A DNA stretch of 63,998 nucleotides, filler included, from Intoshia linei (taxonomy: Eukaryota > Animalia > Orthonectida), in NCBI GenBank assembly GCA_001642005.1. It is 7 parts of 7 records of this genome, joined end to end, with 100 filler letters (N's around TTAATTAATTAA, not from the genome) between each part and the next. Parts side by side here need not be neighbours in the genome. Positions count along the whole stretch, not along the records: positions 1 to 23,088 come from LWCA01000570.1; 6 more parts are not named here. One strand, given 5' to 3'. The position numbers and the translations under genes are program-made. Positions within the stretch are counted from its first letter, which is position 1. Every line of letters starts with the position of its first letter. Shown one piece after another: positions 201 through 23,088 of this stretch. Below the pieces are notes generated by a model. The model worked only from the letters and a program-made list of their open reading frames with translations, was not told the origin of the DNA and ran no database searches.

Positions 201-606
201 CTTTACCGCCAGGTAAATTATTTTTAAAGACTTAAAATAAACTTTAAATTTTAGTTCAACCTAGTAAACTATTTTAAACAATACACATAAAAATAATAAC
301 AATATTTGTACATAAATACATGTAAAAAATATTAAAATTATTTATAAATTTAGCTCTAGTGCCAAGTAAATTATTTTTGTTCCTTAAAATTGATAAAAAA
401 TAAAAACTAAATGTATTTTAAATTAGCGGCCCCACGTAAAAACATTAATATAAAAATTATCTCTAAAATGTAAAATAATGTATAATTTCTATATCTAGCC
501 GTACCTCCAAGTAATTATTTTAAAAAGTTTTCAATTGGTAAAAAATGAATATTTTTTTTATCAGATAATTAAAAATGTTAAATTATTTTAAAAGTAGCTC
601 CACCAC
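201..606 (+). CDS. Putative micro-exon gene segment encoding a Pro/Thr-rich peptide (six exons alternating 12 and 9 nt)
   Basis: TAG|exon|GTAA units at 201-212, 255-263, 354-365, 427-435, 499-510 and 598-606, separated by 42-90 nt AT-rich introns. Joined in phase 1 they read xLPPVQPTLVPTAPPVPPTPP with no stop. The exons are C-rich islands in near-pure AT sequence. Confidence 0.7.
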
Positions 607-811
607 GTAAAAATTTATTTACAGTGAACGATAGTACGTTCAGACTAGTGTTTCAATATCGGTAAATTATTACCCGTAATTATTTTCAGTTACCGTAAAT
701 TTGAAAAAAATTTGATTCTTATAATAAAACGTTTATTTTTTACTACGTTTTTGAGATATTGATGCAGTGTTAATGTTGAATTAAGTAAGAGTTAATTAAG
801 TCGTTCTACAC

Positions 812-1001
812 TAGTGTGTTCAATGTTTGTAAAATGTACTGAGTTATTTAATGAATACTTAGTTTTACTTTTACTGAGTTATTAGATTTTTTACAGTTTT
901 TATATTGTAAAACTAAGTACATAAAACTTACTGAATTTCTAAAAAAACTAAGTTGAATAGTGTTCAACTTAAATGTTTTAACTTTAATTTAGAACACACT
1001 A
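812..1001. mobile_element. hAT-type MITE
   Basis: TIRs TAGTGTGTTC / GAACACACTA; 8-bp TSD ttctacac / ttttacac (7/8 match). Confidence 0.6.
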
Positions 1002-1839
1002 TTTTACACTCGTTGAAAGTAATAATTAGATTTAACTAATATATCTAGTGTATTAAAATATTTTATATAAAAAACTCTGACGAAGCCAAGTTTTTAATTG
1101 TTTACGTTGTCAAAAATTTTTTATGATTTTACCTTTTTTATTTCAAGGTGAAAAAATAAAAAATATTTATCATTTCGACGACTCGAGACAATTTTGTGAC
1201 GTCAAATCAATGTTTATTTTTGATTCTGATCTATTGGTTAAACGTTAAATTAAAACGTAAACTCAAAATACCAAATAGAATTGATTTAAAAAAACTAACG
1301 TGGATCTATCTAATAAATAAATAAAGCTATCATATGTTTTTTAGCATATATATAATAATATATATCGATTTTGTCAAAGTAACCATCATTTCATATGCTA
1401 GCATATTTAGCATGCTAGAAATGACATCCATAAAAAAATATCATAGCAATAATAACTTATCTTTTTTTAATATTTGTCTCATCTCTGAATGCACTGTCGC
1501 GCACCGTTATACTAAACATTTTTAAATTTTAAAACTTAACAAAATATGTATATTATAGGTATACATTAAATGGATCACCTTTTAAAAAGTTGATCCGTTT
1601 TATCAATGTGCCACTACCCTTCTTTTTTTTTTTTTTTGGTCTTTTTTGCATCGTTTTTTTGGGAATGGAAATTGAAAATGTAGAAAATTTCTACTTATAA
1701 TACATTGCAATGTAGTACATGCTGTGGCAGGCAATAGTTATTCAAATGTGGCTTACAAGTTGCATAATTTTTAAATTGTGAAAAAAAAATTGTACATTTT
1801 TATCAATTCGTTTACATTATATTAATAAAATAATTTTAG

Positions 1840-3838
1840 ATCAATCGGTACAACAACCTGTTATGTCTAGTAATTTTTTTAAAATGTAAAGTTAAAATTA
1901 TTTCAATCAATCTATTTTATAAATTAAGATTGTCAACATTTCTGAAGTAAAACTTGAGTGAATATAATAGACTAAGCTCTAACCCAAATTTTTATTAATA
2001 TTATTTTATCTTTTGAAAGCGTTTTGGAAATCTATCATTCACAGAAAAAATATACTAATTGCCTAATTAATTTCATATATTAATACTAAAATAAATTAAT
2101 ACAATTTAATACAATGATCTTCAATTTAAGATTAAAATTAAACAATTAATTTGAAAAATTTATTAATACTCATAATTATAGTGTCACAAAATGGATATCA
2201 ACCGCAATATCAGCATCAAAGTATATTATATAATATATATTATAACTAGGTGATTGTTATGAACTACATACAAACAATCTAGCACTACCGAGGGCACATT
2301 TTTATTCTAAGAAAAAAATAAATATAAGAAATGCTACTGAGTTAAAAATCTGAGATAACTGCATTAAATGTAAATTTTTTTAAAATTCTAGGATTAAATT
2401 TTATTTTCATTTTATGAAAAGAGTATTTTGTGGTTTTGGCCCCTAATTTAGGGGCCCTAAGGTATTTTTTTTTAAATTTAAATTTATGACAATGTTCATG
2501 ATTTTAAAATCTGTATCAAATTGTATATTATTTTAAATTTTAGGACTCGTCTGATTTAAAACAAAAAAAAAGGAAAATAATTGAAGGGTTTTGACCTGTA
2601 AGATGTGTTTTTGAGATTGAAATTTATTTTACTTTCACCTCCGCAAAAAACTTTAATAGAAATGTAAAATTTTTTAAATTTTAAGACTATTATTTATTTA
2701 TTTATTGAAATAAACGATAACATAACATACATACAAAGAGTTTTATATAAGTTAGGATATACAGACATTATTCACTTAGCTTACTTCCGCTATAACAAAA
2801 AAATAAAAAATTTGCCAATTTTCTTAACCAACTCATGTTTAAGTTGACTTGAATATATATATTTCATAAACTGCAATAGTAGAAATGATATATTTTTTAA
2901 TTATAGATTAACAAATGATGCAACCTGGATATAGTCCAAATAAGTTATTTTAAATTAAAGTTTAATTTTAGATTATCAAGGAATTAATACAGACGTACTA
3001 GAAACTGAAAATTCAGAGACGAAAGGTTAGTTTTTATATATTAGAACTTTATCATAACTTTAGATAACGAGAATTGTAATTTAATTATCTTATATATCAA
3101 TATAAACTGTAATAGTTTTTTCCAACCTCTTTTTATGGTAAGCCCACTAACATTCTTAAAACATCCCTTAACTTCAAAAAATAATTTAGCAACAAATTAA
3201 ACTAATTATTCTTTATATTTTTTATTATTCTTTTTTTCAGTGAATTTTAATTGATTATCAAAAATAGGATACTAGTATAAATAAATACTAACTTAGTATA
3301 ATTATTACTCTTTGAATAAAAAATTTTCAAGTTCAAAATGCTAAAATATTTTTCTATAAGATATAAAAAGTCAGATTTTATAGGTCTAAAAAAAACTTGC
3401 CTAACTAATCATACATGATATAGTGCCAGGCGGCAACCAGTGATTCTTTGAGTAAATATGTAAATTATTTATTTTTTAAGTTTTAAATATTTTATACTAT
3501 AATTGACTCATTATAATCATTTTAATACTGAATTTTCAGACTCTGGATTTTATTTTGTTGAATATATTAGAACCTTTTCAACTCAGTTAAAACTGAAATG
3601 TATTATGTGTAAATTTTCAAAAACGGGGTCGTATAATTTTTTGGTATAAAAAAGTGACCCACGATATGCAAAAGGTTGCTGACCCCTGATATAGTGTATA
3701 ACTAATTTTTTTTGATTTTTTAGACAACGAAAATTTGAGTAAATATTATTTATATGTAGTTTAACTTTGAAAGGTACACGACCCTACATAAGAATTTTTG
3801 CCATTTCTGTAAATGATTTTCTATTTTTTTCGAATTAA
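1840..3838 (+). CDS. Putative micro-exon gene segment encoding a Gln/Asn/Glu-rich peptide
   Basis: AG/GT-bounded exons 1840-1869 (30 nt), 2182-2220 (39), 2972-3025 (54), 3064-3075 (12), 3724-3738 (15) and a terminal exon 3774-3838. Internal exons are all multiples of 3. The phase-1 join reads xQSVQQPVMSMSQNGYQPQYQHQNYQGINTDVLETENSETKDNENYNENLSTRPYIRIFAISVNDFLFFSN*. Confidence 0.55.
2246..2757 (-). mobile_element. Non-autonomous Helitron-like element, internally deleted copy
   Basis: On the minus strand it begins A|TCCTAACTTATATAAA and ends ...ACCTAG|T. Both ends match the copies at 27459-28262 and 50746-51916. Confidence 0.65.
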
Positions 3839-4959
3839 TAAATGTGGTGCCAAAACTGTAATCACAATTTTATTTATCAAAAATTAATGTTACATTTCGT
3901 GTATTCCTTCCCTCCCTACTACACTATATCTTACCATTTATACGGTTAAAATCTCTTAATCCACCTGTTTTTGAATATCCATTATTTTCATTTCTTCATA
4001 AATTTAACTGGTAAAGTACTAGGTAATAAATATAAATACATCATAAATTAAAAAATATAGTTAAATGTAGCATTTACAATTTTTAGATCTTAGTAGTATA
4101 AAATCTTTAAAAAAATATTTCTAAATTTGAAAAATAAAGGTAAATATTTAAATGTAAATCAAATAAATGAAATAATAAAATATATTTTTTTGATGAGAAT
4201 TTTAAAGATACATCCTTTTAAATTATTATAAACTGTTATTTCAACATCATGCAACATTTTCATAAAATCTCCCATATACATAATGTATATAATTAGTTAA
4301 TAAACATTAATGTAACAATATTTCTAGAAGTCAAACGTAAATATTTATATTTATGTTAACAAATAATATAACAATATACTCAAATCTGGTGATACTAATC
4401 CAGCGAATCTACTGTACATAACATATTTTTAATTAGTTAATTTTACATTATTAATTTACATTTTAAAAATATTATTGCATCATAATTAAGTGACTTATAT
4501 ACTTTTAATCTAGATACGATACCAAGTAATTATTCAAATTAAGTAAAAAAAGCTAATTTAAATGTAGATAAATATCTCTTAATCATTTTGCTTCCGGTAT
4601 CCATTGTTCTGTGTTTATTAATTTTCATATCAATTTTAATTTGTGTGATTCGAATAAAAAGAAAAAATCGACTTAGAAGAGTAAAACGTATATCACGAAA
4701 GATTTAATTAGCAAGTTAATAAAAATATTATATTTATTCTTTGATATTGAATGGTAAATTAAAATAAAGTACATTTTTTAATTACAAAATAAATACAATA
4801 TAAATTTGTATAATTTAATTTAAAATTGAAAATCACCAATCGGTAAACTACAATAAAAAGATTAACATATCTCAAATTAAAATAGATCAGTTTCCCAAGT
4901 TGTAATCCCAACGTGTTTCATTTTTATGTGGGCGATGAGATAATTTAAATTTGTTCAAA

Positions 4960-7900
4960 TTAAAAATTGGAAAACATTGATGTTAATAAAAATAATAAAT
5001 GTAAATATACTTCAAAATATTTGGTCAAATAAGGACATTCTTCAGGGCTCGGACCATCTCTATTTCCACTATAACAATCCGAAATTACCTATTTTAAACG
5101 AATATATAAGCATAGTTTAATGTATTAATATAGTGAGCATTTTTGATCGTGACAAGATATTGAAATCGACTCATAAACTTTTACATAAACTCCAAAAATT
5201 GCATAATAACGTAAAATACACAAAATTTAAATAAAAAAAATAAAAAATGTTACAAATTCCCAGATTATTGTTTCCTAAGATCAATTAATAATGTAATTAT
5301 TATTAAAAACGTCAGTTATTTCCATACAATAGATACTACCATTCTAAAAATTGTTACTAGTGTAGGTGACGCTGAAAAGTTTCCATTCCATGAAAAAAAA
5401 TTATACATTCCATAATGTCGCGATCAGAATGTAGACAAACCACTTGGTTGCATCACTCCTACTTTGAGAAACTACTGAGTTAATATATACCAAACACATG
5501 GAACAAGGAAATGCAGACATGCTATATTTGTAAAATTCTTTAGTTTTATAAACATGGATAAAATTGAATTTGTCATAATCACTTTCAATTTTTCCTTTTT
5601 TATGTCTTCGTCTAATTGTACCATCATGATATAGTCGATTCAACAACAAACTAACTTCTTGATCAAGAATTTTAACTTTAACTAGTTGTAACGCATTCAA
5701 ATATGTAGTAATTTCTTGTAAAGTGCACATAGACATTCGTTCTCGTTCTCTGGTGTTCTCTGTTTTTGACATGGATTGTATGTACTAAGATTGTATAAAT
5801 TAAATCGTAATAATTAAAAATACTTTTCTTTTAAAGTATGCTTCAACAGATTTTTGAGCAGCATCAACAAAATCTGTATCAATTTCTCCATTTGTATACC
5901 AGATGTTTCCTCTAACTTTCTCACATGGAACTACATCGTTCATAAAAAGCAATTCTTTACCAGTATCCTAAAATATAACATTATATTCAGAATATATTTG
6001 TATATTACAATGTTTCCAACATATTTAGGGTTTCACCTTAATAAAAAAAGGTCATTTATCAAACTTTACTGAAATTAATGTGACTTAAATAACTTAATTA
6101 GACGTGGGGCTTAACAATAATGTAATACAGGATAACTTCACATCACATATAAAGCAAATTTGAATAAATTCAAATAAAAGTCATACCTTCCAATTTAAAG
6201 CAATTAGATTACATATAAAACCTATGTAATTTGGTGTTTTTAAGGATTTGTTCCAGTTTTTTGAAAATTAAATTTAACATTTTAATTGACTAGGTTATTT
6301 CATACACAATCTAGACTCATTAATCTGAAAAAATCATACAAAGTAACTTCATAAAAATGCCAAATTTTGTACTATCTTGATACCTTTAAAAAAATGTTGA
6401 CAGTGTAGTTTTTGGTGTTTAATGTTCCCTATCATTTTACCATAGTTAATCCCCATTTGACGGATATTAATTTTAAAAGATTACAGCACAAGTAATGTAT
6501 TTTATAACATTATGATCAATAAGCTTTTTGATAGAGTTTTTAAATACTACAGTAAGAATACTTGTTTCTTTGCGAACATTTTTGTACAATATTCCTAAAA
6601 AATGGAATATAAATACAACCTATACATCGGTTAATAAAGTTTCAATTTTTTCACACAATAGTACCCTTACTATAAACAAAATGAGGGGTGAATCAACTAT
6701 CATACATATGTTTTTTAAATATGACGGTTACAAGTAGTACGAAATTTTGCAAGGATCACAAATAATATATAAACAACAAAAAAATTAACAGATAGTAAGT
6801 AAATATGTCCTACATCGAACACTTATTTTTAAGTACAATTGAATTCGTCCATTTCCATTTTCCAATCTCAAATAGATACATTAATCATTATAGCCTGTAA
6901 GGGTCGCATTCTTCTGTTCTTACCCTCCGCATCCGTCCACATTTTTCAACAACGGAATACACCAGAGTTCCCATAAAACTGGTAAAAAGTAATACAAAAT
7001 ACACATTTATTATTTACTTATACAGTAATACCTCACTTAACAAACGTTTTAACCTCTAACGTCTAAGCCTTAGCGAACTGTTAAATAATAAATATTCAAT
7101 AATCAACTCCAAAATTGTTTAAAAAAATTGATCTGATAATTATTCCAGGCTGTATAGTTTAAAAACTTCAACTCACAAATGTGACCATTTCCATTGTAAC
7201 ATTGTAACAAAAGATACATAAAAATTTCCAAGCATCCATTAAGAAATACAATCATACAGTCTTAATCAAAAATTTCATTTTTGATTATTTAAATTTTAAA
7301 AATCCATCTACACTTCAAATAAGTAGAGCTAGTCGGCAGAGCTAGCTAATGTTTTTACATAGTATATACTAATCAATCCATAATATAATTTATAAAAAAT
7401 ATGTTTACCTTGATCATTAGCATCACGAATAACATTGACTATATTTTGTTCGTTTATATCAAAATTACTATCTCTACAAATTTAAAAAATTAATTTTAGT
7501 CTATCCAATTTTTAGGAATAAAATGTTTCATATAAATTAAATTTTAAGATAATTTTATTAAAAGTTAGTTCTCTTTTGTCATATTTACTTATGTCTGTCA
7601 GGTCGTAAATTATTCAGTATCTAAAGCTTAGATTCTAAGCCTATAATTAAAAAAAATCGTATCTACATCTTTATGTCAAAAAACGTCTATTACAGTTTTT
7701 TCCGGGGTGAAAGTAAAATAAATTTTAACCTCTGAAACTCACACTTTACTAGTCAAAAACCCATATCTTTTTTTGAAAATCAAACGAGTTCGAAAATTAA
7801 AAAAAATTACATTCTGATACAGATTATAAAATTATAAATATTATTAATGAAAAAAATTCGGAAGGAATGAATTATATAGATTTTCACCCATATTTCTTTA

Positions 7901-9690
7901 TTGTAAATTTGTAGAGTGATATGTAGAGTGTAGACGTTCAATGCATATTTTTTTTGAAATTTTAGGATCAATATTTACATTTTCAATTTATCAAAATATT
8001 TGAAAAATAATGGTTAAAAATGTATTAAAATGTATTTTGCAACCGGAATACGTAGATTTCTGGTGTTAAAATTGTGTATTTATATCAACTGGAATAAGCT
8101 TTATCAGAATAATCTATTTTTTTTAATTTTCGGACTGTTAATTATTTCACATATTTTGTTTTACATGTTTACACGTTAATAAAATATTTCGGAAAAAAAT
8201 ATATGAATACTAAAGTGATTTGTTGACCGTGAAAGCTATGACACTTATTCAGATTGAAATTTTATGTGTGTGTTAACAGGATACAACTGTACCACCTCTA
8301 ATTTTTTGAAATTCTAGGGCTGTTTTCATTAAAAAAAGGGGTCATTTTGGGTTTTGGCTGTGAAGATATATTTTTTTAAATTCTCGAACTCGTTTGATTT
8401 TCAAAAAAATGACAATTGGGCTTTTTGACCCGTAAAATGTGAATTTGGGAAATTGAAATTTATTTTGCTAACACCCCAGGAAAAACAGTAATTGAAATGT
8501 AAACTTTATAAAATTCTAAGACTGGTAGTTATTGAAATAAACAATAATACACACAAACAAAGCATATTATATAAGTAAGGATATAGAAGTTTAATAACAT
8601 TGTAATGTAAATGTTTACCAAACATTTTTTACAGGTTAATAAATCTAGAATTCTATCACTTGTAAAATTTTGATTATATTAATATTTTTTTTAATTGCAG
8701 ACATCAAATATAATTTAACATAAACTCAGTTATGCATTTTTATATTATTTCAAATTTAAATCACACTCTGAGTTTCAAAGCAGGTAATATATTAGAACAT
8801 AGACGAACATAGTAAACATTATGTATTCAATATTATTTTAAAATTGAAAGTTTTTTAAATTTAAGTCATAAAAATAGATAAGGAAACGCCCGCATTTGGC
8901 AAAGTCAGCTGCTGTTTCTACGCAGTACATAACAGACAAGCTAGTAATAATAATTTAAATTTAAATCTAATCATAATTAAAACATACACTGGTGGCTTGT
9001 ACGCGTATAACAATTTTTTTCCTCGTTTTTTCAGTTCAATTTTTTTCTAAATTTAGTATGGATAAAATTAAATAACACCAACATAAAAAATGCATCAAAT
9101 ATAATTAAAAATACTAACCTCAGATAATAAAGTATTTAAAGCTTGTAGAATTTGTTCTTTACTAAAGTCAACAGTAGCCAAATTTATCTTTTTAATATCT
9201 ATTCCAAATTTGGATTTTCGACAAGCTGCAACAACTCTAGAATAATTAAAAAATAGGATATAAATATATATACAGTATTCTTTCCACAACTCCCCAACTC
9301 TATAACTCGCCATTAATTTAAAATATAAAGAAAAGTTTTAAAACCATTTGTCAAAATAAGTTATTTTGTATAAAATTTTACAATTTGTATTACAATTTAC
9401 ATTTTATTGCAATTTAACCTTTAATTTAAAGGTTTTATCTAGTGTTTCTATAGTTTTAAATTCTCTATCTCACCAACTATTTCTAAGTCCCAAATATGGT
9501 GAGTTATAGAGAGAATACTGTATAAAAATAATAGAAAAACATTTGCAAAAATGTTAATTTACATATTTTTTATATCGTAGTCATCCGATTTAAATCTTTT
9601 TGCATCAGGTTTAATTTTTTGGTCATCAAATAAATGTTTTTCAATAGTAGATCCAAAAATGTTGACAGTTTTTTGATCAACTGGGTCCAT
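4960..9690 (-). CDS. POLR3F: DNA-directed RNA polymerase III subunit RPC6 (C34/C39)
   Basis: Phase-consistent exons 9690-9563, 9236-9119, 9046-8988, 7473-7409, 6594-6485, 5967-5824, 5784-5491 and 5088-(5011 or 4960). Peptides DANDQGILYKNVRKET, RGNIWYTNGEIDTDFVD, LLNRLYHDG and the C-terminal Fe-S motif PCSMCLVISDC...PEECPYL match the RPC34 family. Confidence 0.9.
7690..8581. mobile_element. Helitron-like family fragments in a POLR3F intron
   Basis: Shares blocks (ttacagtttttccggg, cattgaacgtctacac, ttctaagactggtagttatt) with other copies. The minus-strand 5' end TCCTTACTTATATAA is at 8581. Confidence 0.6.
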
Positions 9691-10411
9691 ATTAAATGTT
9701 GTTTCTATGTTGAGTAGTTAATATGTTGCTGTAATGAAAGTATAATTTTACATTATCAATTTTCTTTATATTTAGGTCTATTTTTACATTTTTACGTTCA
9801 TTCAGTTTTCACAAGCATATATTAAACGTTCACTTAATTCTAGAAATTTAAATAAATACAATTCAGAATTAACTTTATTTTTACGAAAAAATAAAACACA
9901 ATTACATTTTGTATTTTGTGTTATTTTCTACTAAATATTTTATTTTATTCAAGTTCGGAACTCAAAATTATCCATGCTTTCGATTTGTAAACTTTGAAAT
10001 TAATTTATGAATTATATAGGTAAAGGATCCCCAATTATATTGCTGTTGAATGGTATTTTGAAATTTAAAAAAACTTAAGAAAAAAATCTCCATGTCAACA
10101 TATTGAGAATTTTATTGACTCATTTACTTGTAGTGATTTACTAGTAGTGAATAACTGAATAAATAATGTATTTGAACTATTTAGTGCAGTGCGTATGCAA
10201 TTCATTCTATGCAGTTGAAAAAACTGAAAGAGTTTAAGTATACGTATTAAAAACGTTTGGATTATGTTTATTTTTATCCAAATTAATATGCAATTTGGAT
10301 ATAATTAATTAATTAAATATAATCTTTTAAATTTCGGAGTCTAACCGAAAAATGAAATAAGTTGTAATAAACATCATTAGGAAATCATTAAATGAAAATT
10401 AGAAGTAAGAA

Positions 10412-13400
10412 ATGAAAAGATGTGTCGAGTTTTCGGCCAAAATTGACATTGAAGATGACAATGTACGAGTTTACAGTAAATATGGGATTATTAAATATGT
10501 GTCATATTCATTTGAAACAAAGTTAAACTATTTAATAGAATCGCATTATGTATATTTGTATAAATATATTTCTAAAAAAACTGTACAAGGCTTAATTTGT
10601 TGTGCAATAAATTTAAATTCGTTAAAAATTGTGATCTATCCAATCTTTAATAATAAATATTTACTTTTATTTTAATTGGAAAATAGGAACAGAAATGAAT
10701 TCTGCCTCTATAGATAAATCGAACAGAATAGATGGTATTATCCATTTACAGTGTAACAGTACATACATTTAGATTTGATTAATACTTTCCTAAATGACAC
10801 AAAATCTTACAAAAATAAAAATTCTAAAGTTATGAAGTCTATGAGTGACAATTTTTTTGATAATGTTAAATTTCAACCTAATCCACAGAAATCAAGTTTT
10901 GCACCCAATCCGTACTTCAAACCGAATATTAGCAACGATGTAATATTATTGAAAATATTAATACAACATGAATGGCCAAGTGTAATGATTTAACTCTTTC
11001 ACTGTCTGATGCAATTTTATATACTATCACCACACGTCTGTAATTTATGTTTTAATTTAAACTTTAATTATTTTTAAATTACCAATGAGAAAATGTATAA
11101 AAATAAAAGAATAGTTTTTCAAAATTATGTTGTATATATCATAGAATACACAAACGTGTAAAGTGAAATTGCTGTGTATAGTATAGAATACACAGACAGT
11201 GAAAGGGTGAAAGGTTTAGAGAGCGCACTCCTTAAACTGGTTCTAAGTTTTTTTTAGGAGACGTTACATATTTTTTGGTATATATCAAGTTTTTGCTAAT
11301 CATGTGCACAAAATGTGGTGGTATTGAGAGGTCTGACTGTATGTTTAAATGTATTCCATTAAACATTATGTACCCACTTCAAAATTAATTTTGTGTAAAG
11401 AGTTTAAAAAACAATTTAGTAATGCGATTTTTTTATTTTTTATAAAATTCTAAGACTTTTTTCATTTAAAAAAAGGGTAATTTGATGTTTTGACATGTAA
11501 TTTTTAATTGACAATTTTTAATATATTATCAACCAATATTTTTCAAATATTACGATTATAATAAAAATTGAAAATGTAAATATTGATCCTACAATTTCAA
11601 AAAAAATGTGCATTGAACGTCTACACATTTCTAACAAAGAAATATGGTGAAAATTTATATAATTTATTCCTTCGCAATTTTTAAATCTCAAATTCTCATT
11701 TCCAAACCATTTTGTTAAAAATTTAACATGTAAATTAAAATTAGAACAACGATTACTAAATTCTATTTTTAATTCTATTTATTACAATCCTTTGCAATAT
11801 TGGTTAAATTCACCTGAAATATGTTTATAAAATGCTGATTCCGTTAACTATTGATACATAATTGGTATTTTTAAGTATTTATTAAATTGGTACTGAATAT
11901 ATATTTTCACATTCAAAATGACAAAATAGGTTTTTATAATTTTATTTATTCTGGAATTTATGCTATTTATGACAATTTTTTAAAATTTGACTGTTTTTAC
12001 TATATTTTTCAATCAATTTTATGACGATGATTATAATCACGTTTGTTTTTATAACGATTAATTTAATAAACTTTTTTTTTATCATGATATTTTTTATCAC
12101 TATTCGTTTTTATCACGATTTTAATTAAACTGAAATTAAAAATAAAAAATTAATAGAAATAACAGAATTAAATAAATAATTTTGTGATATTACATTTTAA
12201 TAATAAATTAACTAATGGTAAATAGCAAAATAGTTAACATTTAAAGATAAAGCATGTATAGTTCTCATTATTTCTGTGTGATTCAACATTATTCTTTTTA
12301 TATGAAACTTTAATTTCATAATGCAATCTTTTGTAAGGCTATTCTCCAGCTATTGCCTTAATGTATATACCACGTTGGAACTCATGTTCTTCCTTGAGTT
12401 TTCCAATGAGCTTCCAGACAATAGGATGAATCAATTAAAATCAATCTTCCAATGAACAAAACCATAGACTCATATAAAATATCATTCTCTAATCCATTTA
12501 ATATTCCATCTCAAGTTTCGTGATTAATCCCCACTGGGGATGCCCAGCTTAAATTCTTGGCTTGAGCAATTTATTAAAACATAAATAAATGGAAAGTAGT
12601 CTAGCATAGCTAGAATACTGAAAATATCAATTAATAAACGTATATTTAAATCATTACATGATGATGTGTGACATGTTGATGAAAGATTTAATGCGATATT
12701 ATTAATTTTAATGATAATTTTGATAAAAACGACGTTTATTAAATTAATCGTGATAAAAACTAACATGATTATAATAATCGTGTTTAAAAATATGTGCACC
12801 GATATGATGGTCCACCTGAAACAAATTTGGGAACCACTCTGTAGTATTTGATACGAATTCAGATTTAATGTAAAAACACTTTAAGAGTGATAATATATTA
12901 TATAACTGATTGATGTAAATAAAGGTGACAATCACACTTTATTACACACTCCTTTAAAGGATTGATAATAGTGCATAGTAAGATTTTTAAGTTAGATTTT
13001 CAACGTGAATTTATTTTTTAGTTTAAATTTAAGTATAATAAAAAGTGCCCTTCGCAGAGCTAGGTCCTGTTTGTTCGTAGTACATAACGGACAACCTAGT
13101 ACTTCTATAATATTCTATATTATATGGTAGCACTATTTTAAATGATAATTTTTATTGAAAAATTTTCCAAAAATTGGGTGATAAAGTGCGTTTTTTTTTT
13201 GAACCAAACTTTTAAGAGTGGTTTTTAAGAATTTTTTTGTGAACCAAACTTTTAAGGGGGGTTTTTAGGTAGTTTTTTTTGAACTAAAATTTCAAGAGAA
13301 GTGAAAAATTTTATACCTACCAATTGAACGATAATTGATATCAATATAGAAACAGCATTACACTAACAAAACAAAGTAATTAAGCAGTGTATTTTAAACC

Positions 13401-16400
13401 AGATTAGGTTAAATAACAGCGTGCAAAATGAAGGAAGTTGTGTATTATTATAAGCCAAAATTAATTTACGTCACATTTCAGTCTGCAAAATGAATGAAAT
13501 TTACATTATTATAAGCCAAAATATATACTATACGAAAAGAAATTTGAGTTTATTTTATAAATTTTTAGATTTTGAATTTTTTGTATTTTTAGTATGATTT
13601 TATATTTTTATCGTTTTTAAACCCGTTTAAAAGTTTGGTTTAAAAATTATTTCCTAAAAACCCCCCTTGAAAATTTGGTTTAAAAAAAATCTTAAAAACC
13701 CCCTCTTAAAGTTTGGTTCAAAAAAAATTACTAAAACCCAAAATTAAACTAAAATATAAATGAAGTTTTACACATTCTACGACTTATCCATGAATTGTAT
13801 ACATTCTACGACTTGCCCATAGAATGTGTACATTTCACAGTTTTACACATTCTATACGACATATACAAAGTAAGTAAGCATCATTAATAGTATAATAATA
13901 AGATAATTATCAAATAAAGAAATGAAAACTGTAAATCTTAGCAGTTTAGTAATTGAATTTTAGACAAATAATTACACAATGCATTACAAGACCTATGAAA
14001 ATGAAATAAACCTTGCCCCAAACTATGCAAACTCAGAAGTAGGTAGTTTCATTAATTCTTCACAAACATACGATGTGTCAATGTATAGTAAAGAATATAT
14101 ACCCAAAAATGCGCAATCTAAATTAGATGAAAATTTTTACAGAAATTATAAAAAAGAAAAAATATTGTACAACGATTCTAATAGTATGCCACGAAATTGG
14201 AACGAACAAATGATTTATCCAAATAAATGCAATAATATATACGACGATACACTCATTTCAATGTATGGTTGTGACTATGATAATTTTGCGTCTGTTCCAA
14301 ATGGGATCGCTTTAGAAAACGTGCCAATGAATGATGTTTATCGTGATTCACAACCGACTAATTCTAAAAATTTTTACATGCAACAAAACTCTAATTTTCT
14401 TAAAAACACTGATAATAATGTGTCACCCATTTTTAGTGTAAATAATTCTCGAGATGACAGTTTCAATGTATATAACCGAAACGTAAATACGGATGAATCA
14501 ACCCACAAAGCTAATAGAATGAACAATAGTACAGATCAAAGTACTGGTAAAATGTCTGTTTTGAGCCCAATATATCATGAATATAAATATAAAAAGGGTA
14601 AGAGAACTAGCAATCATAATGTCATTGAAAAAAGATATCGCATGAGTATCAACGATAAAATAATGGAATTGAAACAAATATTAACATCTGAATCTGAATT
14701 GCGGGTCTCTAAGGCTATGATTCTAAAATTGGCAATTGCAAGAATTAAACACTTGCAAAGTATAAACCGAGAACTAAATTTGGAAAATAAAAAATTAAAA
14801 CAGGCAATTTATTGCAATGGATATGTCACACCTGCTTTGAATACTGATGATTTTCAAACTAATATGGCGGGAAACGGGCATAGTGAAAATGCTCCGTTCG
14901 GTTTAAATTTGAAGGAGAGTACTGAACATGTCACATGCAATTATCCAGATTCTTCACCAATTATGCGCTCCAAGGCGAAACAAAAGATCAATATTACGCA
15001 CCCGAGAACGAATGTGTATGCATTTATACTGCTGTGTGCACTATTTTCCTTTAATCCTTGTTCAGTGATATCAAGTACATTTTCTTGGTATCCAATATTT
15101 GGAAAAATGGAAACAAAGTCAATCCAAACACGCACAAATGTTCCTAGTCGTGTTTTATTTTCTGTTAATAATAATCCCAGTATAGATGAATCGATAATGG
15201 TAGTTAATTCTTCTGCTTTCAGTGTATTTTATATCGTATTTTTTTGGGGTTTTGGATGGATGATCAATTTTGTCATTATGATGATTTTATTTAAGTTTTT
15301 TTTTTTTTTACCACGTCAAAAACTATTATCTGAAAAAGATTCATCGACAACTGAAAAATTGAAAAAAAGCGGACCTGCCTGGGAAAAAGAAGAATGGGAT
15401 CAATTGCACAAGGATTTTGATTTACTTTCAAAAAAACTAGAATTTGGTCACCTGGAAAGCATTTCAAATATTAAGAAAAAGTTTAATCAAAAAAATGAAC
15501 AAGAATATGAATCTTGTAATACAAATACTGCTGATGAAAATTCTAAAATTCGCAATAAAACACTTCAAAGCATTATGGCACACTTCGAACAATATGATAC
15601 AATAAAATTTGTCGAAAACATTGGCTTTTTAAAAATTTCCTTTGCTCTTTTTATTCAAATAATTTTTTACATTTTCAATTTTTTTCTCAATCCCTACATA
15701 ATGATGAATCGGGTATTCACTACTCCCGATTATTTGAAGATTGCTTATTTATATGATCGTATGTTGCAAATTTGTTTCCACGAAATTTGTACCACTGAAC
15801 CCAAAAAACGCCGTAAACACTTGAATATTTTAAGCTTGTATTTCGCTTTTTCTTCTTTGAATGCTGTGAAAAACGTAAAAACAAAAAATTATTTGGATCA
15901 AAAAATTGCAATTTACTTTAATGCTTCTATTATTTGTCGACTAGTTTGTCCTGACTGGATAAAGAAAATTATGCATCGTTATTTTTGTAGGCGTGCCATG
16001 CGGTTATATTACAAGTTAAATAAACCGCACGATACATTTCATTGGCTGAAACATCCATTGGGAAACAAATTTTTTTTTTCAGATGAAGGCAAACATGCAT
16101 TGAGCAACTCATTCAAATGGCACGACTTTAACTTGTCTCGCCAACAGTTCACATTTGACCCATTGATTAAATTCAAACAACATTTTGTATGCTGGCTTTT
16201 CAATAATGCATTAATTAACTCACCAAAAAATTTGGAATATCCTACTACAACCAATTTTCCTAGACCCGAAGACACAATGACTCCATTGATGTATCTAGGG
16301 AATATTAAAAATGTTTGCAGTCGAAGGGACGATTATGAAATTGTAGAGTTTTGGTGGTGTTCTTATATTGAATTGTCTGCGAGGTGGCCTTTTTGCAACA

Positions 16401-18259
16401 ATGAAAAAATGAAAAGAATGACTTACAGTTACAAATATATACAAAAATCTACTGGAAATGAAAATTTCTTACCTTTAATGAATGTTTCTATTCTGTTATA
16501 TTTCTCTGGACAAATTGTTATTAATTTCGACAATGCCAATTTAAATCATTTACAAGATTGTATTCATTCAATAAGGGAACAATTTTATATTATTGTCACA
16601 AAATTTTTTAATTTTTCTGATACGTGCAATATCATCCTGTTTAAATTTTTCGATTGGTTGATAATTTGTAAGTTCAAAGCTTTAAGTTATTATCAAGATC
16701 ACAACGAGGTATATGCCATTTCTGTGGCCAAGAATATTGAAAAAGATATTGCCGTTATGTCAACTATATGTCTCCGTTTACACCATTCCATTAAATCTGA
16801 TTTAGAAACCAAAGTATTATAATTATTTCATTTAATTATATTTTTATAGATCAAACTTCACAAAACAATGCTTCTGATTTTAAAAAGAGTTAATCTAGTC
16901 ATTTTATTGGATCAGGTTAAATGAGTTGATAAATTTGAGAAACAAAAAATTGGTATTTATTATATTCATATTTTAATATATAAAATATGTACATTGTACA
17001 ATAGGTACTAGTAGGGTTTTTATGATTCTTGATTCTATCCATTGTTTAACTTTTTTTTAGTCTCACACCGCTCAAGTAAAAAAATTTTTCCCTATCATAA
17101 AAAAATTTACTCTAGCATCACCAATTAAATTAGAATGGTAGTCCTGTCATTATATGGAGCTCGTCATAGGACTTTAGTCTTTGAAGATCTAAGACCTTGG
17201 ATTGCATAGTTTTATTCATATTATGATATTATTAAATTTATTTGAAAAATATGCGTCCCTTGTACCACTTTAGAGATCCCTAATTTGAATGTAATAAATA
17301 GTGTGGACCATTTTCTGTGCTGTAACATGGGCGCAATAAATTATACCAACGGAGTGATAATGGGTTTAGAACATGGGTGTCAATTATGCGACCCACGGGA
17401 CATTTACATCCCTAGTGGTGGACTGTGCGAGCCGTGATATAATATACATTTTTATTTTTATAGCAATTTTTTACTTAATATTACCATTTTTATTGTTTCT
17501 TATTTTATTTTATGAATTAAAATTATTATAAATTAATTAAAACTGTTAGTTTTAACATAATTTTTTAGTAAAGATATTTTTTGTGTATCCCGTAGAATAA
17601 TTTTTTTTGCACATTTGACCCCGAAGCAATTTGAGTCTGACACCCCTGGTTTAGAGTTTTAACTTTAGACTCTAGAGCAGTGATTCCCAATTGGGTCCTT
17701 GGACTCCTAGGTCAGTGATGGCAAAAATATGACACACGTGTCACTAGTACCACGCACTCGGACTCTGCCTGACACGCTGGTAAAAAGCTTATTTGAAATT
17801 TTTAATATGTTGTGGAAAAATTAAATCAAAAGTGTGTAATAATAGAAAAGTATATCTAAAATTATTTATCATTTAAAAAAGAACACGCAACTAGAAAAGA
17901 AAACAGCAAAATTTTTCTATAACACGCTAACTAAAATTTCTTGCCATTACTGCCCTTGAGGAGTAAACTTTTGATATTCAAATTTTTTCTATGGATCAAG
18001 TGAAATAGACTGTATCACCATAATTTTAACTAAAATGAAAAAAATACCATTGCACTCCAATGTAATTTTGAATACTATTATATATATACTTACATACATT
18101 CATTTTCTATTATTTGATATATATACATGTATTATTTTAGCTCAAAATTGTATACAGGTTTCTTTTTTGTTTCAATATTCACAACGTCAACAAGATTCAA
18201 ACATATCTTATTTTTCATCATTGAAACAAACAGTATCCTCCATTCTCAAAGTCAAATAA
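10412..18259 (+). CDS. SREBF: Sterol regulatory element-binding protein (membrane-bound bHLH-Zip transcription factor)
   Basis: bHLH HNVIEKRYRMSINDKI carries the SREBP-diagnostic Tyr. TM1 has the NP motif (ALFSFNP), followed by luminal RVLF (S1P-type site), TM2 and the C-terminal regulatory domain. Exons: (10412-10475 tentative), 10687/10695-10734, 10773-10939, 13964-16813, 16850-16924 (TGA) or to 16952, and possibly 18141-18259. Confidence 0.9.
10994..11207. mobile_element. piggyBac-like MITE
   Basis: TTAA|CTCTTTCACTGTCTG ... CAGACAGTGAAAGGG|TGAA: terminal inverted repeats with a degenerate TTAA target. Confidence 0.6.
11500..13099 (+). mobile_element. Helitron-like family copy, interrupted by the MULE, with an intact 3' end
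   Basis: Colinear with 27150-28262; ends ctgtttgttcgtagtacataacggacaacCTAG|T. Confidence 0.6.
12024..12782 (-). mobile_element. Non-autonomous Mutator-like element with a transposase remnant
   Basis: About 65-bp imperfect inverted repeats at 12024-12090 and 12712-12782. The internal minus-strand peptide HPIVWKLIGKLKEEHEFQRGIYIKAIAGE* resembles MULE transposase C-termini. Confidence 0.6.
13171..13745. mobile_element. Foldback-type element with inverted arrays of ~40-bp subterminal repeats
   Basis: The left arm has three tttttgaaccaaacttttaagrgggg-type units. The right arm has their reverse complements (ccccctcttaaagtttggttcaaaaa). Confidence 0.6.
17372..17648. mobile_element. hAT (Charlie/Buster-like) MITE; related copy at 57348-57660
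   Basis: TIRs CATGGGTGTCA / TGACACCCCTG; TSD gtttagaa / gtttagag. Confidence 0.7.
17713..17952. mobile_element. hAT MITE with CAGTGATGGCAA termini
   Basis: CAGTGATGGCAA ... TTGCCATTACTG; same terminus as the element at 60719-61303. Confidence 0.55.
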
Positions 18260-18821
18260 TAAAATATATAATGTATGCATTGTATTTTATTGTTTAAATA
18301 TATTATATCTAATTTTGAAATATTTTAATAATTTGAATTTTTATTAATAGACACATTAGACACCAAAATATCTTATGTGACATTTTTAAATTGACAGTCA
18401 AAAAAATTGAGCTAAAAACAAATTTAAAAAAATAAACTATATAACTAAACATGGAGTACAATATTATAAAGTCGGTACCACATTTAAAATCTCAAACGCC
18501 AATTTACGTTAAAATAAAGTTCAGTTTTAAGTTTGTAATATATAGTATATATATAGAAAACTTTAAATGGTCAGGCTAACTTCACCGTATGGAGTTAACC
18601 GAAAATATTTTACAATAGTTATTATTTTAATAATACTACAATTTTAAGCCCTAAGGATATTTTTTCTAAATACCCATGAGACACCTTAGTGTACATTGTA
18701 CACGACGATATTGCTGAACAAATTATTTACATTATTAGTTCACATGATTAATTTACACATTATAATACAAATAGTGTATATTAGTAAATAAATTAATGAA
18801 ATACTTTATATTACATGTAAA

Positions 18822-19519
18822 ATGAGTTTTTCAATTTATTCAAAAAAGATTTTTTTGTTAATATTACTGATGGGGTATGTTAATGTAAATTCAATGCAGC
18901 ATGTACAAGAATATAGCGATTATTTTAATTATAAAATATGTGGAATATCTTATAAAAATATACACAAAAATATGATGAAGTTGGATACAAATGAGATAGA
19001 GAAAATTCATCAAAATTATATACTTGATAATGTAGAATTGATCATCTATGGAAGGGTATTATTGCCTCCAATATTCAATCTAATTTAATTTCCTATTGAA
19101 TCATTAATGAAATTGATATTGTATGATAGTTTTAGTAATGACTACTTTTATACGATAAGAGCTTACACATTACTTATCGATATATTGTTTTTTTGGTTTA
19201 TTATACCATTAGTATTTTATGTAGATGACAGAGTTCATGCAGGGTTCTATCAAACTGAATATTTTTCTAAATGGGACACTATGGAAAAAAATTTAAATAT
19301 AGTATAATAATGTGCACATGTATGTATGGCATCTCGGAACTAATGTGCCATAATTGTCCATTTTACAAAAAAATGTTAATTTTAACAATTATTGGAGTTA
19401 ATGATATTATTCAAACAATTTGTGATGAATTCAGTGTTCATTATATCTATAAAGATCATCATATATACAGTAATTTATCACGTGGACAGCATTTGATATC
19501 ACATTGTTCCAGAATCTAA
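18822..19519 (+). pseudogene. Decayed intronless ORF with a signal-peptide-like N-terminus, family unknown
   Basis: Three consecutive ORFs: 18822-19088 and 19107-19307 in the same frame across one stop, and 19271-19519 frameshifted. The N-terminus KKIFLLILLMGYVNVNS is hydrophobic. Confidence 0.35.
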
Positions 19520-20534
19520 AGTCTCCAGTAGCTGTTTTAGTTTGTTTGTACGTTATAAATAAACTAATTTATTTATTTTAACCAAATACTGGATAATATT
19601 TTTTAATGTTGAAGTCGTTAAATTTGTAAAATTTATTTTTTTGGCCCTCATTCGCCATGTGTTTATACCAGCCTGTTCAATATCATAAATTCAAACCAAC
19701 AATTAGATCCAAACCTAGCGTACTTCGAACTCCTCTTATCTTTAATTTTGTAAAATGGTGGCTTGTTATTTCAAATTGACCATTTAAAAAAATTATTTAC
19801 AATTTAGTGAAAAGGGTTCTTCATTTTCATTGGTTTATATGAGAACATCAATTTATGATCAATATGAAATCTGTATTTTCGAAGTGTACACTGTACAGTT
19901 GTTTTTTGTTGAAATAGAATTTAATTCCAACAATTGAAAAGAATGTGTATTTTAATTATAATTGGTAGAAAATTAAATTTAAATTAATTTATTGAGAATT
20001 TTGCATCTTAAAATTTTTTTTATCAAATTACAATATTTATGAGATTGTTTTACGGTGTCATTAGTATAATAATTAAATAGTTAGTATGAAAAAATTTTTT
20101 TAGGATAAATTTTAGATTAAAAATCTAAAAATTAGCATATAATATTCTCTTAATAACTCGCTAATTCTGTATTTCGCCAAATGATTATTACTTAAATGAA
20201 TAAGACAAGTCTTATAGGGGCAATGGAAAATTAATAATAAAAATAATACTAAACAAAAAAGGGGTCGACGTAGTTTATAAATCTATAATTTTAACTAAAT
20301 CGTTGATGTACAATTGGGTGTCACATTTTTTTGAAAATTTTAGAATTCGATGGGCAATTAGCACTAAAACTATGTATTTTTAAAATAGAAAAACTAATTC
20401 CCAATCAAAAACATTTAACGTTATCTATTAGAGTTGTGTTTGTCATTTTAAATGTCACATTAAAAATATTATTGAGAAATTAAAACTGAACTTTATTTTA
20501 ACGTAAATTGGCGGTTGAACTTTTAAACGTGGTA

Positions 20535-20855
20535 CAGTCGGACCTCGGATTGGGCACCATTTTTTGAAAAGTGCCTCAAAATCAAAAGTTTTAGTAAGTT
20601 ATCTAATTTTTCATTGAATATTCAAACTATTGCAATATATTATGATGTTATATTTGTCATTTTGACATTTGACATATTATATCAATATATCTCTATAGGA
20701 ACTATACTTATATATTTTATATTTACAACATTTTTGCCCAAAAAGCGGGGTTAATTTCACATATATTGCTATGGCATCGATCTAAATACTATAAAATTAA
20801 CATAATTCTGAAAAAGTGCCCCAAAAACCGAGTATGCCCCAAAGCTGAGTCACTG
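20535..20855. mobile_element. pogo/Tigger-like MITE inserted at TA
   Basis: TA|CAGT...ACTG|TA. It splits a repeat whose uninterrupted inverse (tcggTAccac) is at about 18472. Confidence 0.7.
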
Positions 20856-21388
20856 TACCGACTTTATAATATTGTTCTCCATGTTTAGTTATTTTTTAAA
20901 TTTTTTTCTAGCTCAATTTTTTTGGAATATATTAACGATTTAATTTATCGAATTCTGGCTACTTTATTTACATTATTTAAATTTGTTTCAATTTGAATTT
21001 CAAAGTGAAATTTGAATGAGTGAAAAGTTAATTTACGTTATTTTGGTAGCAAATACTTTATTTTAGTAGCTCATACTTTATTTTTGTAGTAAATACTTTA
21101 TTTTACAGTGGATGTCACCTACATGGCTTATGTGAATAAAAGCTTCAAAACGGAGTTAAATCAAAATTTAAGAAATAGATAAATGTAGAAAACATTTCAT
21201 TCATCACAGCGCAAATATTTTAAATTCGAAATAATTAACGCATAACAACAAATACTAATAATTAAAAATAAAAATAACTAAAACCAATTAAATCAAAGCA
21301 AAATATAACTCGTTTCGAGATTGCTTGCTATTAAAAGTTATAAAAATTAGTTATAAGTTATAATATAGTTATTAGTTATAAATTTTAG

Positions 21389-22208
21389 CGGATTGTAAAT
21401 TATATTGCACATTAATTAATATTGACAGAAACTTTGTTTATTTTTATTAAAATTTTAAAATCTGTATATTTGTAAATGGTATCATTAATTTCAGGTAGTA
21501 ATTTATTATCAATATATGCAATATTTATATAGCTTACAATAAATTTTATTAATATTTATTATATAATTATAGAAGGTAAAAACTATTTTTATTTCTATTA
21601 AAATATTATTATTTAAATTTACATCATTAGGACGTAAACTTTATAAATTATAATTGTACATGTGACTTTTAATTTTATATATTTTATATTGATGCATTAT
21701 ATAATTATAATACATTATTACAATTTAGAAGGTAATAAAATGTATTAAATATGTTTTAAAATTTACAAATAATTGTATAAAAAATAATTTTCATTTATTA
21801 ACAGAGCGTAATTTTTAATTATTAAATTTCTATAATTAGTATACAATATATTTAAATATTAATTAGCAAGTAAAATATACAATATTTGTAGTAATTTTGT
21901 CAGCAATTGACTAATATACATAAAACTAAAATTAATTTCCTTATAACAAATAATTTTGATATAATATTAATGATTTTAAAATAGTTATAATTATTCTTAC
22001 AACTATTAGTAAATGTCAGTTTTAATCATTATAAATATATTAGACTGTAAAATTTAAAATATTTTTATATCGATCAATGTTAATAGTGGTCTATTAATAT
22101 GTCATTTTATAGTAGGTATATATAAATAAAAAAAATATAGATGTAATCTGAAACGTTGATAACAAATATTTTCTTTTTTTAGAAAGTAATATTAATATAA
22201 TATAGTGA
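21389..22208 (+). other. Array of candidate 3-nt micro-exons plus one 6-nt exon
   Basis: YAG|NNN|GTA at 21495, 21573, 21631, 21729, 21805, 21867, 22044, 22113, 22183 and 22206, plus YAG|CGGATT|GTAAAT at 21389. The phase-1 join is xDCKGQEPNLEM, stop-free. Confidence 0.6.
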
Positions 22209-23088
22209 GTAAGTTGTTAGTTGCAAAAGGTTGCTGAACCTTTAATTAGCGATTAATTAATCGTAACGGAATTTTTTTATAAAAATATACAAAAAATCTT
22301 TTTTACAATAAAATTTTCCATCTTAGTTATCATTGACATATTATATAAACAAAAAAAGCATTTAATGAAAAATCTTCATGTCTGTCATGAAGTCTATGCC
22401 AGTTAACACACTTCATCTTATCCCATTTAATCGTTGAAATTTGCGGATACAGTAGAAGCCGTTTATAGTAGGATCAGAGCAGTTTTGATCTTAGAATTTA
22501 GAATTGATGACTATAACCGACTTTATCATCTCTAATAATCGAATGAAATTTCATACATTTTGATCTACATGTACGTGAATTCTTCTTTTTGATCACTGCA
22601 AGCGACTTTTATTGTAGAATTATATTTTAAATACATTTGAAGTAATTTAAAAAAATACCATAGCTACATATCAAAAAAAGTAATATTTTTATTTTAACTC
22701 ATAAGTAAATAACCAGCCCGTTAACCTTATTATGTTTTTTAATGAGGTAATCCTTTATATTATAGTGCATTATAATTATTTTTAGAATTAGAAAAACAAT
22801 TACACTATATAAATTTGTTTTATTTAATTGTTAAACCAAATAAATAATTTAATTACAGGAATGTATGTGAATATCTAAAAATTTAATATTTAATAAATTT
22901 TTTGATTTTCAACATTTAGATAGCTAAAAAAATAATTTTTTAGTAAATTAATAGTTTAATCTAGTAATGAGTAGTACGAGATCAATTTTGGTGTAAATTT
23001 AAAAAATTCATGTTTTGCGTTCAGATACGATTGAATTTATACATATTTATTGAATACAAAATGCAGAAAATATATTATATCAAGTGTC

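Follow-up and report, generated by a model that had tools for sequence, protein, structure and literature searches.

Predicted micro-exon genes on an Intoshia linei contig

The window is a stretch of 63,998 nucleotides (nt) joined from seven records of the genome of the orthonectid Intoshia linei (GenBank assembly GCA_001642005.1, 41.6 Mb in 3,520 contigs). Its first contig, LWCA01000570.1 (positions 1-23,088), was analysed whole and has a guanine-plus-cytosine (GC) content of 18-31% per kb. The plus strand of this contig carries three arrays of very short exon-like intervals, which a sequence-only reading had described as separate and likened to the micro-exon genes (MEGs) of schistosomes. 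The arrays were recovered in our analysis, but they most likely represent two genes, as arrays 1 and 2 have a common terminal exon. We refer to these as gene A (arrays 1 and 2) and gene B (array 3); the contig would thereby hold two members of an unannotated class of micro-exon gene. Two conventional genes, Rpc34/POLR3F and an SREBP-like gene, stand between the arrays.

Short intervals bounded by splice signals were unevenly distributed between the strands. Intervals of 3, 9 and 12 nt between YAG and GTAA occurred 13, 8 and 6 times on the plus strand and 1, 1 and 2 times on the minus strand, and 43 of 86 short plus-strand intervals had lengths divisible by 3, compared to 15 of 42 on the minus strand. 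Eight plus-strand intervals of 6-15 nt with YAG and GTAA flanks had a GC content of at least 50%, against 0.85 in shuffles of the whole contig. Six of these eight fell within positions 1-700, as five separate exons and one overlapping alternative. Strict YAGNNNGTAA sites numbered 14 on both strands of the contig, compared to 4.95 ± 2.2 in shuffles. Chance occurrence in AT-rich DNA was ruled out by the shuffles, by the strand asymmetry and by the reversed-pattern controls described below.

Predicted structure of gene A

Array 1 consists of six GC-rich islands (33-89% GC, five of them at 50-89%) separated by introns of approximately 15-20% GC. Every island lies between AG and GTAA and scores well at both its acceptor and its donor. 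The corresponding predicted exons, all on the plus strand and in phase 1, alternate between 12 and 9 nt: 201-212 (12 nt, AG/GTAA, 58% GC, acceptor/donor scores 7.5/8.5), 255-263 (9 nt, 8.2/6.9, frame kept open), 354-365 (12 nt, with its flanks 85% identical to 186-225), 427-435 (9 nt, 89% GC), 499-510 (12 nt) and 598-606 (9 nt). Together with their flanks, the 12-nt exons are up to 85% identical to one another. The alternation and the flank identity point to three tandem copies of a two-exon (12+9-nt) module encoding a 7-residue proline-rich repeat, with exons 201-212, 354-365 and 499-510 opening copies 1, 2 and 3.

Seven further candidate micro-exons follow on the same strand. The first two are rich in glutamine, at 1840-1869 (30 nt, phase 1, Gln/Pro-rich, scores 8.5/8.6) and 2182-2220 (39 nt, Gln-rich, 7.4/6.8, open in phase 1), and the third, at 2972-3025 (54 nt), is open in phase 1 only, with stops in phases 0 and 2. 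The remaining four, all in phase 1, lie at 3064-3075 (12 nt, Asn-Glu-Asn), 3724-3738 (15 nt, 6.4/8.6), which the preceding exon resembles, 4328-4336 (9 nt, less certain at 4.8/8.2) and 4514-4525 (12 nt, 6.7/7.1). The interval 2907-2943, although similar to an exon, was discarded: its sole acceptor is followed by a phase-1 TAA, and it lacks an in-frame GT donor.

The predicted terminal exon (4568-4707, plus strand, 140 nt) encodes a strongly hydrophobic membrane helix (Kyte-Doolittle 19-residue maximum of 3.17) and a basic, Lys/Arg-rich tail, and ends with a stop codon at 4705-4707. A likely polyadenylation signal of gene A, AATAAA (4718-4723, plus strand), begins 11 nt beyond the stop codon. 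Of the three frames of the terminal exon, only phase 1 is open, which supports this phase independently, in agreement with the genome-wide tests below.

Arrays 1 and 2 are probably one gene (201-4707, plus strand), joined through this common exon. The resulting model comprises 13 micro-exons of 9-54 nt, all of lengths that are multiples of 3 (3n) and all in phase 1, and the terminal exon; the 14 exons read through phase 1 without a stop and yield 123 residues. Along the product, proline-rich repeats are followed by Gln-rich and then acidic Asn/Glu-rich segments, the membrane helix and the basic tail. We predict that the protein crosses the membrane once, its outer part being of low complexity. 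The 5' end lies beyond the start of the contig, and the gene has at least 14 exons.

The long introns of gene A, of up to 1,233 nt, hold dispersed repeats. The longest, of 1,233 nt, includes the end of one such repeat (645-700), with at least 16 copies on other contigs at 78-100% identity. Another repeat is present in two copies that are 71% identical, one in a gene A intron (3667-3721) and one directly after array 3 (22222-22276).

Predicted structure of gene B

Array 3 (21389-22208) contains one 6-nt and ten candidate 3-nt exons, with YAG and GTA[A/T] flanks, spaced 55-174 nt apart on the plus strand. The 6-nt exon (21389-21394, scores 8.0/8.8) is followed by 3-nt exons at 21495-21497 (CAG/GTA/GTAA), 21573-21575 (TAG/AAG/GTAA), 21631-21633 (TAG/GAC/GTAA), 21729-21731 (TAG/AAG/GTAA), 21805-21807 (CAG/AGC/GTAA), 21867-21869 (TAG/CAA/GTAA), 22044-22046 (TAG/ACT/GTAA), 22113-22115 (GTAT donor, scores 5.9/6.1) and 22183-22185 (TAG/AAA/GTAA). 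A last candidate at 22206-22208 is doubtful, as the intron preceding it would be only 20 nt long. Nine strict YAGNNNGTAA sites fall on the plus strand within 721 nt (21492-22212), for which the Poisson P is 2.5e-16. The exon at 22113-22115 splits a 136-nt intron (22047-22182) into 66 and 67 nt, and its inclusion removes the only phase-1 stop of the chain, which is open in phase 1 only when this exon is included.

Array 3 is bounded by dispersed repeats. The one just upstream (21010-21345), probably within an intron or at the edge of gene B, is approximately 250-290 nt long and has at least 12 copies on other contigs at 89-96% identity, which suggests a recently active non-autonomous element. 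When paralogues of arrays 1 and 3 were sought at the DNA level, only dispersed repeats matched.

Further upstream, two inverted repeat arms (18426-18540 and 20470-20907, 88-89% complementary) bracket approximately 2 kb. Between them lies an open reading frame (ORF; 18822-19088) whose N-terminus looks like a signal peptide and which matched no Pfam family. It may be transposon cargo, a separate gene or a 5' exon of the array 3 gene.

Arrays of 3-nt exons elsewhere in the genome

The design of gene B recurs in the assembly. A triple pattern of three 3-nt exons spaced 45-95 nt apart was found 54 times on approximately 24 contigs, compared to 4 times in the reversed control, and a double pattern 257 times against 96 in the control. 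Gene B belongs to a class of about 25-60 loci with 3-nt exons. For the analyses that follow we used 154 kb of array loci from 14 contigs carrying the triple pattern.

Within this sample, AG-N3-GT occurred 672 times in the sense and 206 times in the antisense direction, and every other spacing from 0 to 12 gave 193-311 occurrences. After filtering by splice-site score, sense and antisense counts were 207 and 4 for 3-nt exons, 13 and 2 for 6 nt, 11 and 3 for 15 nt, and 5 and 2 for 9 nt; lengths below 22 nt that were not multiples of 3 showed no excess. The sites hold to one strand for 10-40 kb, with 59 sense and no antisense sites over 20 kb on one contig and 42 and 1 on another. Their density was 3.0 sense and 0.31 antisense sites per kb in the array loci, approximately 0.56 elsewhere, and 10.8 in array 3 of the contig. 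These loci consist of arrays of the motif that are coherent by strand and restricted to lengths that are multiples of 3. Strand and length counts and the array statistics agree, and they bear out the grammar that had been proposed for the contig: plus strand, 3n lengths, phase 1 and short AT-rich introns.

The 3-nt exons have intron-like flanks, in which G drops to 3-5% ahead of the AG. Distances from site to site are most often 70-100 nt, and the median intron has 82 nt and 14% GC; a median intron length of 57 bp is reported for Intoshia linei (PMC6543705). Intron lengths divisible by 3 were not in excess (89/85/64).

One locus, L012 (450-1100; G000:C2698:30450-31100), has a thinning array of 3-nt exons and, on the same strand, 6-, 9- and 15-nt exons whose phase-1 readings are acidic and Asn/Asp/Glu-rich, resembling the juxtamembrane micro-exons of gene A. 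The double pattern was counted 179 times on the forward and 78 times on the reverse strand (55 and 41 in the control), and by contig the triple pattern was forward on 19 and reverse on 5 (two-sided P 0.007). As contig orientation is expected to be arbitrary, this forward-strand excess may reflect how the assembly was oriented.

Evidence for coding in phase 1 and probable ordered joining of exons

A phase-1 junction codon takes its first base from the end of one exon and its other two from the start of the exon that follows. At 245 junctions between neighbouring 3-nt exons there was 1 stop codon, compared to 11.8 ± 2.7 after shuffling, and none of 5000 shuffles gave so low a count; in phases 0 and 2 the junctions contained 17 and 19 stops. 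The two halves of a junction codon lie approximately 80 nt apart in the DNA, so that nothing but selection acting on the joined RNA could link them.

Junctions that would result from skipping exons were assessed in the same manner. At lags of 2, 3 and 4, stops were found at 6 of 136, 5 of 72 and 4 of 42 junctions, at or above expectation. Pooled, this is 15 of 250, against the 1 of 245 at lag 1 (Fisher P 4e-4). The lag control is drawn from the same loci, so it excludes differences in composition between loci and is independent of how the loci were chosen. There is, then, selection for an open phase-1 frame, and it acts across neighbouring exons only. Because stops are avoided only between neighbours, the use of all exons in sequence is the simplest explanation; splicing would then be constitutive and ordered and would not involve exon skipping of the MEG kind. 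We infer both the joining by RNA splicing and the use of every exon from these patterns in the DNA.

Longer exons gave a similar result in an independent test. Of the strong exons of 6-21 nt, all 35 were open in phase 1, compared to 26 and 27 in the other phases (P about 1e-4). Of the three phases, phase 1 also gave codons closest in usage to those of the SREBP ORF, which held when stops were excluded (z 2.25). The residues encoded by the 3-nt arrays are rich in Ile, Leu, Val, Phe and Ala, and the autocorrelation of hydrophobicity along the chains was not significant.

In the mechanism that we propose, short introns (about 40-130 nt, 14% GC, GTA[A/T]..YAG) would be removed successively by ordinary intron-defined splicing, which would join exons of 3n length, all between phase-1 introns. 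The transcript of gene A would carry the repeats, then Gln-rich and acidic Asn/Glu-rich micro-exons, with the membrane helix and basic tail contributed by a conventional last exon. The extreme form would be gene B (21389 to at least 22185), in which exons have 3 nt and each codon is assembled across two exons.

Comparison with schistosome micro-exon genes

Schistosome MEGs share several features with the genes described here. They are strings of very short symmetrical 3n exons that hold most of the coding sequence, they lack homology to other proteins, they are found in the genome of a parasite, and automatic annotation handles them poorly. The sequence-only reading had proposed a possible MEG-like protein-variation system for host-interface proteins. 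Under such a system, symmetrical micro-exons would be included or skipped in different combinations, and a population of variants of a secreted or surface protein would result. All exons here are symmetrical and in phase 1, so that any could be skipped without a frameshift; the exon sizes of gene A (9-54 nt) fall inside the schistosome range of 6-81 nt; and its predicted product, anchored in the membrane and of low complexity outside it, is what would be expected of a surface protein. The genome also resembles that of a reduced parasite, as had been suggested, with which its size, AT content and intron size are consistent.

We nevertheless consider such a system improbable. In the 3-nt arrays, which provide an indirect test, avoidance of stops was limited to neighbouring junctions and skip junctions carried stops at the chance rate. 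The comparison of neighbouring with skip junctions has little power for gene A by itself; in that gene, a direct junction of exon 3064-3075 with 4328-4336 would produce TAG. Schistosome MEGs have an N-terminal signal peptide and small secreted products that vary by exon skipping. Here a signal peptide was not seen, in genes whose 5' ends were not located (that of gene A lies off the contig start); the gene A product ends in a predicted membrane anchor and would therefore not be a small, freely secreted peptide; and the junction statistics indicate that every exon is used. A paralogous family was not found at the DNA level.

The dimensions also differ. MEGs have 10-20 exons, mostly of 15 nt, and introns of 0.1-5 kb, whereas here 3 nt is the dominant length outside gene A, arrays extend over 10-40 kb with dozens or more than 100 exons, and introns are mostly 40-130 nt. 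The resemblance to MEG architecture is real, and one part of the proposal held up, namely that micro-exon genes missing from the annotation combine symmetrical exons in phase 1 with introns that are short and AT-rich. We file the genes as micro-exon genes in kind, set apart from membership in the MEG family.

Relation to other short exons, recursive splicing and intron gain

Exons of 3 nt can be spliced, and single microexons of 3-27 nt, which usually keep the frame, occur in animals, plants and insects. Known microexons, such as neuronal ones, are isolated, often regulated and flanked by long introns, whereas those described here are consecutive by the dozen and separated by short introns. 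The ratchet points of Drosophila are similar in that an acceptor adjoins a donor inside a long spacer, which can then be removed stepwise. They are, however, of zero length (AG/GT) and leave nothing in the messenger RNA, while the sites here have exactly 3 nt and the retained bases are under selection for frame.

A related account treats the 3-nt exons as stepping stones, passengers that cut the long spacers of conventional genes for a spliceosome tuned to introns of approximately 60-100 nt, with the added residues tolerated and not selected for. This would explain why only 3 nt, the minimal in-frame length, is strongly enriched and why the coding signal is mostly stop avoidance, the codon-usage signal beyond it being modest. 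Dispersed repeats within and beside the arrays, unrelated neighbouring introns and neighbouring exons that are not duplicates are likewise compatible with it. Residue-free recursive sites, though, were not enriched (spacing 0, 268 sense and 255 antisense), the same phase is found in all arrays, and contigs as long as 41 kb are taken up entirely by arrays. Moreover, the array strand carries 191 ORFs of 48 amino acids or more; among the 100 of them richest in GC, Pfam recognised no conventional exon and matched only a fragment of a hAT transposase, so that the arrays do not seem to be embedded in conventional genes. We judge this account quite unlikely.

Tandem duplication found no support as the origin of the 3-nt arrays, in which neighbouring introns were no more alike than random pairs; identical neighbouring exons numbered 5, with 7.9 expected. 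Neither recent duplication in tandem nor introns carried in by transposons are therefore indicated, and duplication is supported solely for the 12+9-nt module of array 1. Introners, a form of intron gain through transposable elements, also place many introns of similar size in particular genes, but they are sequence families with target-site duplications, and the introns here show no such family.

The loci might also not code for protein at all. They would then be clusters of splice sites in non-coding transcripts that host small RNAs, decayed relics, products of chance, or spacers removed at the DNA level. Homology and conventional exons were not found, over 95% of the sequence of the loci is intron, and rearrangement and amplification of DNA have been reported for dicyemids, another group of simplified parasites. 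Stop avoidance that is specific to phase and to neighbours, with 35 of 35 exons open in phase 1, would be unexpected in non-coding RNA, the boundaries equal those of the conventional spliceosomal intron of Rpc34, and chance is excluded by the pattern counts and shuffles. We hold a non-coding origin to be very improbable. Structured introns hosting small RNAs (mirtrons or small nucleolar RNAs) were a candidate that we rejected, as 120 introns folded no more stably than shuffles (z mean -0.17, median 0.02).

Weight of the interpretation

Taken with the junction statistics, these comparisons lead us to regard the loci as probable spliced and translated micro-exon genes, a prediction made from the DNA. 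With less assurance, though leaning in its favour, we propose that the genome has single-codon-exon genes, in which dozens to more than 100 consecutive 3-nt exons would be spliced constitutively to encode mostly hydrophobic proteins.

Several points weigh against this interpretation. We know of no description of 3-nt exons that follow one another in runs, and without a strict order of splicing the spliceosomes on adjacent introns would collide. Neither 5' end was located, nor was the 3' end of gene B. One stop is left among the 245 neighbouring junctions, exon chains beyond the high-confidence runs contain uncertain exons, and most of the analysed array loci were picked for their match to the triple pattern. 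The terminal exon of gene A (4568-4707) showed no Pfam family and no match in 1.84 billion representative proteins, so that no entry there, whether it stems from annotation or from a transcript, includes it; this agrees with the lack of recognisable homology noted earlier. Finally, the single motif TAGNNNGTAA was not enriched genome-wide (5982 occurrences, 10138 in the control). The design is therefore a property of particular loci, and a motif common across the whole genome is ruled out, the signal being confined to certain loci.

A literature search found no paper on orthonectid micro-exon genes or on runs of 3-nt exons. If the interpretation is true, present gene finders would miss such genes, some of the genes that seem lost in this reduced parasite could in fact be hidden, and the spliceosome would be shown to process long runs of exons of minimal length. 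Confirmation by RNA would make this the most extreme exon fragmentation in any nuclear genome known to us and a natural system for studying minimal exon length and the ordered removal of introns 3 nt apart. It would also place micro-exon gene architecture outside flatworms, in a genome where its use appears constitutive and not a source of variation, separating the architecture from the variation function assigned to it in schistosomes, and gene catalogues and claims of gene loss for this genome would need re-annotation that takes micro-exons into account.

Conventional genes and repeats on the contig

The flanking genes had been named as POLR3F, SREBP and PARL, with ordinary exons of mixed phase. 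The first two were found, the second as an SREBP-like gene, and a rhomboid/PARL match was absent from the whole contig (1-23,088). Exons of Rpc34/POLR3F lie at 5596-5934 on the minus strand (PF05158, 40.4 bits), with a phase-0 intron of 39 nt (5785-5823) that ends in GTAT..TTAG; this conventional intron and the micro-exon introns have the same GTA..TAG signals. The SREBP-like bHLH protein (13979-16822, plus strand; HLH, E 4e-12) is encoded by a single uninterrupted ORF of 947 amino acids.

Just upstream of the SREBP-like ORF, tandem units of approximately 40 nt form an inverted pair (13192-13271 and 13619-13736). Copies and inverted copies of one short element resembling a miniature inverted-repeat transposable element were found at 2400-2760, 7696-8030, 8280-8590 and 11400-11700. 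The same element is present in array locus L014 (approximately 1700-2230), and the array loci and the contig therefore belong to one genome.

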